Positions 23,130-29,399 of a DNA stretch of 64,000 nucleotides are shown here, piece by piece. Source of the stretch: Ruditapes philippinarum (lineage: Eukaryota). The position numbers and the translations under genes were made by a program. The first letter of the stretch is position 1. Each line of letters starts with the position of its first letter. Below the pieces are notes generated by a model that saw only the letters and a list, made by a program, of their open reading frames with translations, was not told the origin of the DNA and did no database searches. The stretch lies in contig NW_026862116.1 in NCBI RefSeq assembly GCF_026571515.1, positions 124,001 through 188,000 on the forward strand, written 5' to 3'.

Positions 23130-24147
23130 AACTTCAAGAGCGAGTAAATAATGATTAGTCATATGTTGAATTCATTACATAATATACAGTGGTTTTTATG
23201 CTCCCACCATAAAATTATGGAGCAGAACTTGTGTATTTATTCATTGTTTATCTTTCAATTTATCTAATTTATATACGTATTCATTAAATTCTTATCTATA
23301 ATCATATAAATTTTAATTGATTTAAACAAGTTAAATTGCTACTTTTTAATTGACAGTTAAACATTTGTTTTTTGATAATGCAGAATGAAGGATCAATTGT
23401 TTCTACTTCTTATTTAAACTACGTGATTAGATATTATGTTGCATACTTCTTCCTTTTCAATTTGAATTATTTAGATTTAACTTATGATCTGGAATGTACT
23501 TTTTTTAAGAATACAAAGTGGGTTACTGAACACTGAAATAAAATCTATACAAATGCACCTAGACGAATACGAACTGCAATAACACGAATACGAAATTACA
23601 TTTCATTTTTTTTTTACATCTGGCCGGGAACCAATATTTCCGTACAAGTCCGTAATTTCTGACGGTAACCGTTGAAATATTCTCTTCAAAAAAATCCACG
23701 AAATACAGGGTAGCACTCCACAGTTAATTTCAAGTTCCTGCCGTCAATATCCTACAAGCAATACGTCTAATAATTCTGATACCAAACTACACAACCTGGA
23801 AAGAGAAAACACATTTTGTTGGGAACATATATGACAAGATTGCAAATCTACAAAAAAACATCCCATCTGCAATAGGCAGGCACTCAAAAAAGTTGCAATT
23901 CATTCCGTTGAAGCCAAAAAGAGACCCAAAACAACACATTTCGTCCCTCTGACAAAAGATACCTGCAAATATACAGGTTAAAGGAACACCGTCTCTGCTT
24001 TAGCAACTCCCTATACATGCAAAATATCACAAAGAAACTGGTGCTCAACCTTGTAGATTTTTTGCTACAGCTAAAAGTTTGTACTCCCCTGTACAATGAC
24101 TTGTTTTTACCGTGCATGCTGTTAAAAAGCAATGTTTACAAAAAACG

Positions 24148-24843
24148 CGAGCCTGCAACATTTTCAATTTTGTCGTGTTGGGCTTTCTTTAGGGATTCTG
24201 TATTTATCTATTTTATGATCACATCCGTGTTATATGTGCCGTGTGGCGGCTGTAAAAAGTCTCCCCGTACATTTAATCAATGATGTTATATTTTCGATCC
24301 TTGAAGATCGTTCAGCACGATATTATTGTTGTGCTTGTAGTATTTTTAGTTTCAACTTTTCGGCATTTTCTAGTTGGGTGGTTCCAATATTCCTACTTGA
24401 ATAATGTTGAATCACCCTTAGGATATGTTGCCTGCTTTTTAAATTTGTCTTTTGACCTCTTATCTGTGATACGCAGGCTTTATAACCTCTGATCCCCTTT
24501 CAAAATTCTATTTTATTTAGTTCCGCCCATTGTTTTCTCGTTTAGGGCACACGCTTTTTATCACTTGGGGACCATACGCCGCTTTTCATGGAATGGCACG
24601 GAAGTGTCACATTGAAGGTTCCATGATAACCGCCGTATGAACACATCTGCGGATGTTTCTAAATTCAAAATTTTACCAGTTCATGTTAAATGTTGAATTC
24701 TGCTTCAGCCGGTGCTAGGGGGCGTGGACGGTAACTTGCACTTTCCAATACCGTCCATGAACAGGCTCAATCAAACCGAGTCTGCAACATTTTCAATTTT
24801 GCCGTGTTGGGCTTTCTTTAGGGATTCTGTATTTATCTATTTT
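24148..24843 (+). repeat. Structured non-coding unit B: one 629-bp monomer plus 67-bp terminal redundancy
   Basis: 24148-24214 repeats at 24777-24843; several hairpins; homologous pieces at 12961, 25556-25668, 26243-26772 and 27396-27878. Confidence 0.85.
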
Positions 24844-24849
24844 AACTAC

Positions 24850-25202
24850 CACTGACCGTTCCAAAGCGGTACCCCTTTGTGTTCCTTCACTTGTTTTTCT
24901 TGTCTGCATTGTTACTTGTTTTTGGATGTTTACATGTTTTGTGATGTCTGTCTTGTTGGATTTTCGTTGACGGTAGGTATTTTCACTTCCCCTCCCCTCC
25001 ACCTTTTCACCCGTACAGCCCTTATCCCCTTATGGACCCGTTTTTGTTTATATTATTTCACATTACGTGTCCCACTCCTTTCGCCCTTGTGTCCACTCCG
25101 GGTTTGTGTTTGGTGCCTTCTGGGTGCTCTACTTGGGTCCGTCCGGGGGCAGCGTCCTGTGAACGTTGCATTTGCCTTGTTGATCTTTATTCTTGTTATT
25201 TG
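24850..25202 (+). mobile_element. Penelope-like pseudo-LTR, diverged subfamily (A'), starting inside the twister motif
   Basis: Shares ACTGACCGTTCCAA(A/G)GCGG, CGGTA(A/G)GTAT and the 3' ...GAACG..GC.TTT.CCTTGT.GATCTT end with module A. Confidence 0.75.
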
Positions 25203-25668
25203 ATGAAAAAAAAATCTATGCAAAATAGTGATTTTTCGCAATTTTGAGACGTCCCCCGTTGCCATTGTAACAGATTTGCAGGGTAACTTCAAATTTTGAG
25301 TTATGAAAAAAAAAAGAAATTTTCAGTTTCAGCCCATTATCTCCCCAACTGTTGTACATAATTTGATATATGGATATAAAAAAGGAATGATCAGGTCTGA
25401 TTCGTTCAATTTTGTGATGGTTCAATAATGTTTATCAGAGCTATGCCCCTTTAACGTAAAGACTTTCCGTATCTATTGGTTTTCTCCCCGACAGTTGTAC
25501 ATATTTAACTCAAATATGATAAATGGATATGTCATACGTATATGCAGGTCAAAATAATATAGAGTAGAGAAATACAGAATCCCTAAAGAAAGCCCAACAC
25601 GGCAAAATTGTAAAATGTTGCAGGCTCGGTTTGATTGAGCCTGTTCATAGACGGTACTGGAAAGTGCA

Positions 25669-26138
25669 AAAAATATGATAAACAAGATCCTTCAATGAAC
25701 GCAGCTCCCACCCGACCCAGCAACAAGAGCCAGTGGCAAGGAGCCCAGAAGGACCCCAAACAAAAACAGGAAAGGGCACAAGGCAAACAACGGGCAGGCT
25801 AACCACTACCTAAGAATAAAAAATAATAAGAAACTGATAAGGAAATAAAAGAAAACAAATAAATGATTGAACACCAGACCCATAAAGTCAAAAGGCACAG
25901 GGGAAGGGGACACGAGACCCGGGGAGGGGGGAGGGGATAAATAGAATATAATAAAAACTAGGGGCAAAGGGCAAGATACTTACCGTAGACGAGAAAACAA
26001 CAACAGACACAAAAGTGTCACCGAAACAGTATGAAACAACATAGACAAACATCTGAGGAACACAGAGGGGCGCCGCCTTGGAACGGTCAGCAGCATAAAT
26101 ACTATTGGGGAGTTTAAACCGGTTATTGGTGCACCAAA
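25669..26138 (-). mobile_element. Penelope-like pseudo-LTR (module A)
   Basis: Runs from the 3' half of the twister motif to the common 3' end GATCTTGTTTATCATATTT; a tandem partial copy lies at 26139-26243. Confidence 0.8.
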
Positions 26139-26793
26139 TATGATAAACAAGATCATCAAGGAAAGGCGGCGTTCAATGAACGCAGCCCCCACCCGACCCA
26201 GTAACAAGAGCCAGTGGCAAGGAGCTCAGGAGGACTCCAAAAAATAGATAAATACAGAATCCCTAAAGAAAGCCCAACACGGCAAAATTGAAAATGTTGC
26301 AGTGTCGGTCTTATTGAGCCTGTTCATGGACGGTACTGAAAAGTGCAAGTTACGTCCAAGCCTCCCTCCCCAACCCCGGCTTAAGCAGAATTCAAGATTT
26401 AAATATGAAAAGGTAAAATTTGGAATTTTGAAACATCCGCAGATGTGTTTATATAGCGATTATCATGGAACCTTCAATGTGACACGGTAGTGCCATTCCA
26501 TAAAAAGCGGCATATGGTCCCCAAGTAAAAAAAAGCGTGTGCCCTAAACGAGAAAACAATGGGCGGAACTAAATAAAATGGAATTTTGAAAGGGGATCTG
26601 AGGTTATGAAGCCTGCGTATCACAGATAGGACGTCAAAAGACAAATTTAAAAAGCAGGCAACATATCCTAAGGGTGATTCAACATTATTCAAGTAGGAAT
26701 ATTGGAACCACCCAACTAGAAAGTGCCAAAAAGTTGAAACTAAAAATACCACAAGCACAACAATAATGTCATCCAAACCTCACTCTTAGCCCC
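26067..26793 (-). ncRNA. Putative type-P5 twister ribozyme, split in two (5' half 26793-26773, 3' half 26138-26067)
   Basis: Joined halves read GGGGC UAA GAGU GAGG UUUGG ugcaccaauaa CCGG UU UAA ACUC CC C-AAUAGUA uuua UGCUGCU-G A CCG UUCCAAGG CGG C GCCCC. Stems P1-P5 and both pseudoknots can be paired by hand. Confidence 0.7.
26243..26772 (-). repeat. Unit B copy, inverted relative to 24320-24843
   Basis: High-identity reverse complement; the supplied ORFs 24280-24492 and 26474-26776 show the same spurious translation. Confidence 0.9.
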
Positions 26794-26816
26794 ACCATGT
26801 TCCTATAAACGAGACA

Positions 26817-26871
26817 GTGTAAATAAAATGAATCCCCGCCAAGTGAAATTCTAACAGTTGTCATCGTTACA
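26817..26871 (-). promoter_or_regulatory. Degenerate SECIS-like hairpin in the PLE 3'UTR
   Basis: AUGA-CAACUGUUAG-AA-UUUCAC-UUGGCGG-GGAU with lower UGUAA/UUACA pairing; the upper helix is short and GU-rich. Confidence 0.3.
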
Positions 26872-27025
26872 AAAGGTGAAATAAGTAAAACATCGAAATG
26901 GTCATGTAGAAACATACAAAAGAAACCCCAATGACCATAACAAAAGTACTCAATGTCTTAAAGGAAGACAGAGTAACAAGAAGATCACCTACAAGGGCCC
27001 GACGAAGCAAGACAGAAGAAGGGCT

Positions 27026-27365
27026 TTAAGAACTGTCCATCATAGTCTCCCACTTAGTCCGTCAGATGTTATCAAAAGACGAAAGCGTTGCGTCCAACTG
27101 TAAGCGTTGCGTCCAACTGTACATGGGTTGAACACTAAGCATGCGGTATGTCTTAAAATAAAAGGATCATACTCCCTTTTAGTAAAGACAACAGAAAAAT
27201 TACAATGACCCAAGATCTTACGAAGTTTGTAAACAACATCCCCGTAAAATTCAGGCTGGCTAATCCCTTGTCGCAGAAGAGTTTTCAGATCACTATTGAA
27301 TTTTGAAATTAAATCAAAGTTACGATTGTAAATTTTGTAAAATATTTACGTTAATTATAATAGCG
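27026..27365 (-). mobile_element. Penelope-like element (Naiad-type) reverse transcriptase C-terminal fragment
   Basis: Translation YNRNFDLISKFNSDLKTLLRQGISQPEFYGDVVYKLRKILGHCNFSVVFTKREYDPFILRHTACLVFNPCTVGRNA resembles the C-terminus of molluscan PLE RTs (recognised from memory, not searched). The frame ends with no downstream GIY-YIG, as expected for N-terminal-EN PLEs. This frame is absent from the ORF track. Confidence 0.8.
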
Positions 27366-27395
27366 AAGCATTTATCACAACAAAATTACAAGAGA

Positions 27396-27878
27396 ATTGC
27401 AAACTCGGTTTGATTGAGGATAATGGATAAGTGCAACATCCCTCACGCACCTTAGCACCGGCTTGAGCGGTGCTCAATTCACAACACCTAATAGTGCTGG
27501 CATCAATGATACCGAAGGACCAGACAATATAACAACACTGAAGTAAAGTACGGGGCAACTTTTTACAGCTACCACACGGCACTTGACACCCTCATAAGAT
27601 CCCTTATGAAAGCCCAACACGGCCAAATTGAAAATGTTGCGGGCTCGGTTTGATTAAGCCTGTTCATGGACGGTAATGTCAAGTGCAAACTACCGTCCAC
27701 GCCCCCTAACACCAACTTCCCGGCCCCTTAGCACCGGCATAATTCAACATTTACCATGATCTGGTAAAATTTAGAATTTTGAAACATCCGCAGATGTGAT
27801 CATATGGCGGTTATCATGGAACCTTCAATGGGACACGTTAGTGCCATTCCATGAAAAGCGGCATATGGTCCCCAAGTA
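27396..27878 (-). repeat. Unit B fragment followed in tandem by a short (240-bp period) B variant
   Basis: CTCGGTTTGATT at 27404 and 27644; the conserved B blocks recur in the same order. Confidence 0.8.
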
Positions 27879-29399
27879 AACTCATATAGATATGTTGATA
27901 TTATGGAATAACAAACCACGAATAAAGTATATATGTTATTACTGCAGAATCTAGGTAATAAAGCTGTACCAGACAGAACTACCGGTAAATAAAACATTTT
28001 ATTCCAAGAATTATTTCATAACAATTTTGAAATGATACATTTTCATTGTTTTATCAAAAGTTAAGTCTTCAAGAACATGTGACCAGAATAGGCTAATTCT
28101 CTTTAAGTTGACTAACAATATACATACACAGGTCGCCAATGTAAATTTAGTAATCCTGACTGTGAATCACTTAATAACATAATATTACATTAATTACAGC
28201 ATCGGGTGTGTCTAACTGATTAAATTATAGTTATAAACATATTATATGATACCGCCATTGAAATGGAATTGACTACAAGAAGTCGGTAAAATCGGTATAA
28301 ATTTATTTCCATAGCCAGCACGCCGTTTGCAAAACTGATACAATCAAATGTTTACAGTGTTTTATTAACATGACATTTAATTAATATAAATATCACATGA
28401 TAATGTCAAGTCACCAAGCTTGAACCAAAAATCATGCTTTATCTGCGTAAATGATTAATGATTAAAGCTAGTCGTCGTTCTTTACAAAAAAACATGGTAT
28501 AATCATTTAACATCACTGTGATTATTTAACATTTTTTGTCATTTATTCGAAAAAAAGATATCTTAAAATGCATTCAGTTTGATTTGTTTATCTTAAACGT
28601 ATCTTCCAACAGTGTTTAACAAATAGCTTATATATCTTTGAGAATTTGTTGAGAAATGAGAAGATTTTATCAAAAAGCAAGTTCAAGTTTATTGTTATGA
28701 AGTTCTAGGCCATCGGCCCATATACACAATATAATAACAGAAAGATACATGTACATCTGTTTGTGTCGCAAATTACAGAATGCAAAATAGAAGCATATTC
28801 TATTATATTGAACATTGAACAAGAAGGTAGAAAATAATACATATTACAAAGACTTTAATGTTAAACACGTAGTGTCAAGTTCAGAAAATGGAGAACTGTA
28901 CAAAAAAGACATTAATACATGAAAAATATTTTGTTTACATTATATCAAGTCTTCACACAGATATTATTGTCTTATACTATCAAATTTAGGCAAAATAAAA
29001 AGACATTTTCAATAACTATACGGTTATTATTAATAACGCAGTATGGACATATTCTGTCTCTCAATGCTATAATGTCGCCTAATTCCTATGTTTTAGCTAT
29101 CATTTGAACATATGAAACGCGCAAGTGATTTCCTAAAAAGAAAGAAATAGCAAATTCATATTTAGATATTGTTCAACGTCCAATAAAGATTTAAATGTAG
29201 TATATGTGTCATATCTCGTAGAGGAATGAATGTCTTCAGACCAATTTTGTACCAAACAGTCGGCAATACTTTGTTTAAACGAATATAAACAAATTAAAAT
29301 CTAAACATAACCATATATATATAAAAGTTCGCGGACATGTGTAGCCCCCCCCCCCCTTTTTTTTCTTCCAATATCACCCTGCAACCTTAACATATTGTA

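Follow-up and report, generated by a model that had tools for sequence, protein, structure and literature searches.

The window, a 64,000-nt stretch of a Ruditapes philippinarum contig (NW_026862116.1), carries on its minus strand the two halves of a type-P5 twister-like motif, at 26793–26773 and 26133–26067. Read on this strand, the 5′ half is GGGGC-UAA-GAGU-GAGG-UUUGG, and the 3′ half is UGCACCA-AU-AACCGGUU-UAA-ACUC-CC, followed by a hairpin, A, CCG-UUCCAAGG-CGG, C and GCCCC. An earlier note on this DNA had read P5, P2, L1, P3 and P4/L4 elements into these minus-strand positions, and all of them were located there. The features of the motif and its surroundings are collected in Table 1.

Table 1. 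Parts of the twister-like motif and neighbouring Naiad-derived features in the window.
Feature	Position	Strand	Remark
P5, 5′ strand (GGGGC)	26789–26793	−	partner 26071–26067; P5 covaries across families
Junction UAA	26788–26786	−	read from the window sequence
P2, 3′-side strand (GAGU)	26785–26782	−	P2 pairs covary; partner ACUC, 26113–26110
L1, 3′ strand (GAGGU)	26777–26781	−	hand-aligned to the Rfam twister-P1 consensus
First G of GAGG, putative counterpart of the twister general base	26781	−	by consensus alignment
T1 partners GG	26779–26778	−	T1 covariation
639-nt insertion, splitting the ribozyme within palindrome 1	26134–26772	−	intact copies read ...GAGGTTTGGTGCACC...
Rest of palindrome 1 (UGCACCA)	26133–26127	−	followed by a linker; region 26117–26133 is the P1 replacement
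Palindrome 2 (AACCGGUU)	26124–26117	−	occupies the place of P1 together with palindrome 1
L1, 5′ strand (UAA)	26114–26116	−	predicted scissile bond U 26116 / A 26115, by homology to the twister consensus
P2, 5′-side strand (ACUC)	26113–26110	−	covaries
T2 dinucleotide CC	26109–26108	−	covaries (T2 helix)
P3 hairpin, an optional twister stem	26088–26107	−	covaries; CAAUAG here vs CAGCAG
P4 (CCG/CGG) closing L4 (UUCCAAGG)	26073–26086	−	97.5% paired in the cross-family alignment
T1: CC of L4 with GG of GAGG		−	pairing
T2: terminal GG of L4 with CC 26109–26108		−	pairing
P5, 3′ strand (GCCCC)	26067–26071	−	covaries
Remaining 3′ UTR to the 3′ end of the Naiad copy (...TCATATTT)	25671–26066	−	loose ends at L050 6116–6119 are the family 3′ terminus
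Remnant of the C-terminal end of the Naiad RT ORF	27040–27213	−	resembles the C-terminus of the intact 474-aa RT ORF
Inverted, truncated second copy; L4 is UUCCAAAG	24850–24875	+	14.9 bits, E = 0.11

TTTGG stands on both flanks of the insertion as a 5-nt duplication, and the break lies between TTTGG and TGCACC. The window copy also carries two substitutions that weaken P3. Because it is split by a later insertion and damaged in P3, it is a dead, inactive ribozyme. The diverged A′ copy of the earlier note exists as a fragment at about 24850–24875, but it is inverted on the plus strand, and only P4, L4 and the P5 3′ strand are left of it.

The last ~80 nt of the insertion match the 3′ terminus of the Naiad family described below. 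A similar ‘unit B’ at 24148–24843 shares this ~80-nt tail, which is by far the deepest-covered part in the read layouts. Since both the insert and ‘unit B’ end in the Naiad tail, short non-autonomous elements with a borrowed Naiad 3′ end are suggested.

A 101-nt query over the 3′ half gave at least 1,489 candidates in the genome, 40 of which were scored; at least 30 of the candidates are uninterrupted copies of 88–91 nt. Of the 29 other copies retrieved, 28 have the two halves joined without a gap as an 88-nt unit, and a sister subfamily has a 91-nt unit in which the P3 loop is the sole difference. The two halves in the window therefore belong together as one motif, as had been proposed from the split copy. 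Within the genome, the copies are 92–100% identical. Most of them carry GAGC, which leaves an A·C mismatch at the P2 pair adjoining the active site, so that the GAGU/ACUC pairing put forward in the earlier note holds for the window and about one third of the copies but not for the majority. The third T1 pair is U·U in the R. philippinarum family (positions 25 and 49 are both U).

The copies share a common 3′ end ~390 nt past the motif and have variable 5′ ends, as expected of elements that insert by target-primed reverse transcription and are truncated at the 5′ end. Measured from the predicted cut, they end ~440 nt downstream. The 3′ end of inserted copies is thus not set by the cut, which does not bear out the earlier proposal that cleavage defines the RNA end.

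The host of the motif is a selenoprotein-type Naiad Penelope-like element. Upstream of the motif lies an RT reading frame, intact at 474 aa in many copies. Direct reading of the DNA further upstream reveals DKA and GPKY (the GxKF/Y motif), and at the CxC position the frame gives TGA-D-C. A GIY-YIG motif (..IQYVGQTGRS..REH) is found upstream of the RT ORF in L052 and again in the next tandem unit of L050. In-frame TGA codons stand at cysteine positions (L052:2400–4100): one eight residues past DKA, others ahead of the GIY-YIG motif and within the zinc-finger region. Directly after the RT stop, intact copies have a SECIS_1 match of 33 bits (Rfam cut-off 35), which starts 22 nt past the stop codon (L050:5353–5414 and L096:945–1005). 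This host agrees point by point with the clam selenoprotein Naiads, in which an in-frame UGA at a conserved Cys is combined with a SECIS just after the stop (PMC8557442); GIY-YIG, DKA, the in-frame TGA codons and SECIS together uphold the Naiad assignment made in the earlier note.

The SECIS was also considered as the identity of the motif itself and rejected, being a separate element ~220 nt upstream. In the window copy, of which only the remnant of the RT C-terminus is left on the RT side, no SECIS was detected by an Rfam scan of positions 24000–28000 at E ≤ 10. The next unit in L050 begins directly at the 3′ end of the previous one, which is the tandem layout typical of Penelope-like elements. 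No hammerhead family matched at E ≤ 10 in window positions 24000–28000 or in the L050 3′ UTR. This agrees with the report that Naiads are without canonical hammerheads, a paper that questions the importance of the ribozyme (PMC8557442) and that bears out, for Naiads, the earlier statement that Penelope-like elements with an N-terminal EN lack them.

For a comparison across families, RT homologues were aligned, yielding 98 related loci from metagenome contigs and host contamination in bacterial assemblies, with RT identities of 28–79%. A hand-made descriptor placed the motif after the RT in many of the 98 loci before any covariance model was made. The covariance model R1 was built from five sequences with the nested helices P5, P2, P3 and P4 only, T1 and T2 being left out. 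It gave 48 matches in the 98 Naiad RT loci, all on the RT strand, with the same architecture seen behind the RT gene in 37 independent Naiad loci. Among those loci whose sequence extends far enough downstream, 21 of 23 have the motif at an RT identity of at least 60%, 12 of 12 at 50–59%, and 4 of 16 below 50%. It mostly lies 292–382 nt after the RT stop. In L148 and L080, which show tandem units, it stands on each side of the ORF, 3.8–4.2 kb apart.

Pairing was analysed on the R1 alignment with T1 and T2 added by us; an alignment fitted with R1 favours the nested helices, whereas T1 and T2 are free of such bias. Overall, 91.9% of the pair cells are paired, compared with 68.4% in shuffles. The covariation score is 0.541 versus 0.157 in shuffles (0 of 500 reach it) and 0.05–0.085 for slid partners, and in 18 of 22 pairs both partners change. 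For P2, pairing reaches 94.6% and each of the four pairs has changes on both sides, and P4 (3 bp plus the G-C closing pair) is 97.5% paired.

Both pseudoknots covary as the earlier note had assigned them, even though they are absent from the search model. T1 pair 27–47 is GC in 33 sequences, AU in 6 and other in 1; C27–G47 changes to U-A in six sequences, in which GAAGG occurs together with UCCUAAGU. Pair 26–48 is GC in 38 sequences, and pair 25–49 is GC in 14, AU in 3, UA in 3, UG in 3 and unpaired (U·U) in 17, so many families have T1 with two Watson-Crick pairs only. In T2, pair 13–31 is CG in 19 sequences, AU in 13, GU in 5, UG in 1 and other in 2 (the Rfam consensus is G-C), and pair 14–30 is CG in 37. 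Recurrence in 37 loci and covariation are the comparative evidence for the P5-open twister fold that had been proposed from the window.

Some families depart from this scheme in P2. Those at 67–71% RT identity have lost one base from the P2 5′ strand: L071, L073, L074, L078, L079, L082 and L108 read ACCC where others have ACUC or GCCC, giving a bulge or internal mismatch in a helix that is said to be length-critical. Among distant loci, L155:1418–1530 and L143:1711–1760 show GAGUGAGGG and then a palindrome, with no L4 that could be recognised; these could be decayed copies or another variant.

The twister hit that the earlier note had expected from Rfam was not obtained. There was no twister match in the window at gathering thresholds, in the 4-kb region 24000–28000 at E ≤ 10, or in the intact copies L002, L010 and L050 even at E ≤ 10. 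Searched genome-wide, RF02684 gave no match among the 80 scored of ~14,700 candidates, and the controls were silent too. The gathering threshold was reached by none for RF02684, RF03160 and RF03154. The best Rfam twister score for the motif was 24.1 bits, a partial match of RF03160 (twister-P1) to the relative L092 in the expected register; canonical P1-type twisters in the same genome score 64.4 bits.

Individual residues were compared with the Rfam twister consensus, as displayed in the alignment of one of these canonical P1-type twisters, and with the structural description in PMC5408937. The scissile UAA, the A that follows it, and the G-A-G-G strand are all kept, as are G23, U24, C26, C27, A28, A29, G30 and C32 of L4 (core G-U-x-C-C-A-A-G-x-C). 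These conserved L1 and L4 nucleotides are held in the window copy, in the genomic copies and in 41 distinct sequences, and P2, P3, P4 and P5 follow each other in the order expected for the P5-open permutation. The motif differs from the consensus at positions 13 (C) and 31 (G), where the exchange leaves T2 intact, and its junction ahead of P2 has one base less.

The bases after GAGGN are not complementary to those before U^AA, and there is no canonical P1. The segments UUGG, UGCA and CCAA, which the earlier note had taken for P1, do not form one. A conventional P1 of UUGG with CCGG was likewise rejected, as it fails in the L101 group. In tested twisters, P1 is dispensable, the base before the cut is free, and compensated pseudoknot pairs work; high-throughput data on natural and mutant twisters show that P2 and P4 tolerate mismatches, bulges and deletions and that the pseudoknots are the sensitive parts (PMC11662667, PMC5113685). 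The deviations of the Naiad motif fall mostly in these tolerated classes. From the comparative pairing and covariation, together with the partial match of L092, we conclude that the double-pseudoknot twister fold is present and under selection.

The place of P1, between GAGGN and the predicted scissile U, is taken by two self-complementary segments of 20–26 nt in total. Palindrome 1 is GC-rich, perfect and 6–10 nt long, with more than a dozen sequences across families; it measures at least 6 nt in 95% of the sequences versus 18% of shuffles. Palindrome 2 follows the pattern AAAC..GUUU, and the predicted scissile U is either contained in it or marks its end. In two lineages, palindrome 2 is self-complementary only via G·U pairs, which speaks for RNA and not DNA. 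As each segment is complementary through its centre, a hairpin fits poorly and pairing between two copies fits better. Cofold energies, in a calculation that ignores pseudoknots, are likewise suggestive of dimers (−12.8 kcal/mol, versus −7.1 kcal/mol for shuffles). In Penelope hammerheads, helix III is palindromic and dimer action is assumed (PMC4209133), and by analogy the palindromes replacing P1 suggest dimer action in Naiads. In a topologically consistent layout, the outgoing strands of two ribozymes would pair together and the returning strands likewise.

We regard it as quite probable that the window holds a decayed copy of a P5-open twister and that this ribozyme is a standard part of the 3′ UTR in a large Naiad subclade. 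The motif lies ~300 nt past the RT stop, behind the SECIS in selenoprotein families, and ~440 nt ahead of the 3′ end of the element. As predicted from sequence, the transcribed RNA would cut itself between the U and A of the UAA that follows palindrome 2. Read-through transcripts of tandem or partial-tandem (pseudo-LTR) insertions would thereby be processed to unit length, as has been proposed for the hammerheads of other Penelope clades, and this processing may here be gated by dimer formation. With the P1 hairpin replaced by two self-complementary segments, most likely pairing between two ribozyme copies, cleavage would depend on a dimer or tandem. Transcript processing of the Penelope-hammerhead type would be the most economical reading of the function.

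It is possible, if doubtful, that Naiad twisters are obligate dimers, in which a two-helix bridge between two active sites replaces hairpin P1 and cleavage takes place only in tandem or dimeric RNA. In this new architecture, both the strand that exits the core behind GAGG and the one that comes back to the scissile U would be paired with their equivalents in a second ribozyme copy. If this were true, the solution would be convergent with that of the Penelope hammerheads, and ribozyme-gated processing of dimers or tandems would be a general requirement of Penelope-like retrotransposition.

In the RNA runs X23 and X24, read ends do not pile up at the predicted cut, at a depth of only ~10–20 reads. 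Two further public runs labelled as transcriptomic RNA-Seq, X21 and X22, contain thousands of chimeric reads joined at each GATC and cover both strands equally (L050:5527–6199); they behave like Hi-C DNA libraries.

This lack of a pile-up can also be read as a sign that the fold, derived from a twister, has a non-catalytic job in the 3′ UTR, as a handle for RT/EN in target-primed reverse transcription or as a dimerisation element, and does not self-cleave in vivo. Cleavage is a prediction from sequence, P1 has been lost, T1 and P2 are weakened in several families, and both palindromes look like signals for dimerisation; even Penelope hammerheads show poor cleavage in vitro (PMC4209133). However, all residues of twister catalysis, namely the A that follows the scissile bond, G and A within GAGG, and the core of L4, are kept across RT divergence down to ~40%. 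A purely structural role does not need the invariant UAA/GAGG loop, and the imperfections seen are of tolerated kinds (PMC11662667). We therefore consider such a non-catalytic role rather improbable.

We think it very unlikely that Naiads merely host the ribozyme of a separate non-autonomous element, retrozyme-like or related to the ‘unit B’ repeats, that inserts into them or travels with them. The region is indeed a mosaic of nested and inverted repeats, the insertion with its Naiad 3′ tail indicates that non-autonomous relatives exist, and Craig et al. raise the idea of hammerheads parasitising Penelope elements. Yet the motif lies at a fixed distance after the RT stop and on the RT strand, in 33 of 35 loci at an RT identity of at least 50%, and in intact copies it is continuous with the SECIS-bearing 3′ UTR. 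This fixed place and strand and this continuity indicate that the motif evolves with the RT lineage and not as a separate insert. To a chance resemblance to twisters, conserved merely through the youth of the copies, we attach almost no probability: the Rfam models give the motif no score and the near-identity of copies within the genome is on its own uninformative on structure, but families at 40–79% RT identity keep the architecture while most pairs change on both sides, pseudoknot pairs outside the search model change as well, and slid and shuffled controls score far lower.

The Naiad motif has a close counterpart in twister type P5 (RF02684, clan CL00120; Roth et al., 2014). The order is the same: P5, junction, P2 strand, GAGG, P1 position, U^AA, P2 strand, T2 dinucleotide, P3, P4/L4 and P5. 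The L4 core G-U-N-C-C-A-A-G-N-C, the two pseudoknots and the predicted cleavage dinucleotide are likewise shared. Unlike type P5, the Naiad motif has two self-complementary segments instead of a P1 hairpin, its T1 often consists of two Watson-Crick pairs, its pre-P2 junction is one base shorter, and it is missed by the Rfam models. In most families T2 is C-G or A-U, unlike the G-C of the twister consensus.

The minimal hammerheads of Penelope-like elements are similar in setting (Cervera and de la Pena, 2014, PMC4209133; Lunse et al., 2017). They too lie in the terminal repeat or 3′ region and, in tandem insertions, on both sides of the ORF; a palindrome replaces the helix adjoining the cleavage site, which implies a dimer, and copy numbers are very high (PMC4209133). 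In contrast to them, the Naiad motif would belong to another ribozyme class, its fold and active site being unrelated to theirs, and it occurs in the clade where hammerhead searches failed (PMC8557442). Retrotransposons with twister variants are known among the RTE/Perere-3 non-LTR elements, which have them at the 5′ end (Liu et al., 2021, PMC8501958; PMC7761336), and these variants share the twister class and a reduced or unconventional P1 (PMC8501958). Whereas the RTE/Perere-3 twisters are of P1 type, occupy the very 5′ end, free the element from upstream transcripts and form P1 partly from the target-site duplication, the Naiad motif is of P5 type and lies within the 3′ UTR of a Penelope-like, not a non-LTR, element, ~440 nt before the 3′ terminus. 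No paper linking twisters to Penelope-like elements was found in the literature searched, which is consistent with the novelty suggested in the earlier note.

In many marine invertebrates, Naiads outnumber all other Penelope-like elements. They have been singled out as the clade that thrives without a hammerhead, which cast doubt on the importance of the ribozyme (PMC8557442). With a twister conserved at the equivalent place, the requirement for a ribozyme would have been kept while the ribozyme class was swapped, and the apparent Naiad exception would then count as evidence of function. Tens of thousands of twister copies that current Rfam models miss would be added as well. The variant, P1-less and palindrome-bearing, would be suited to the study of dimer-dependent cleavage and could serve as a marker for annotating Naiad 3′ ends.

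The canonical twisters of the same genome mentioned above are found at L060:1024–1566 (G000:C102, ~237743–238280), where RF03160 scores up to 64.4 bits (cut-off 67.2). They are spaced 235–239 nt apart within a tandem array of 235-nt units (2.3 copies, 90% identity), apparently a satellite or a retrozyme-like twister repeat that has no relation to the Naiad motif.
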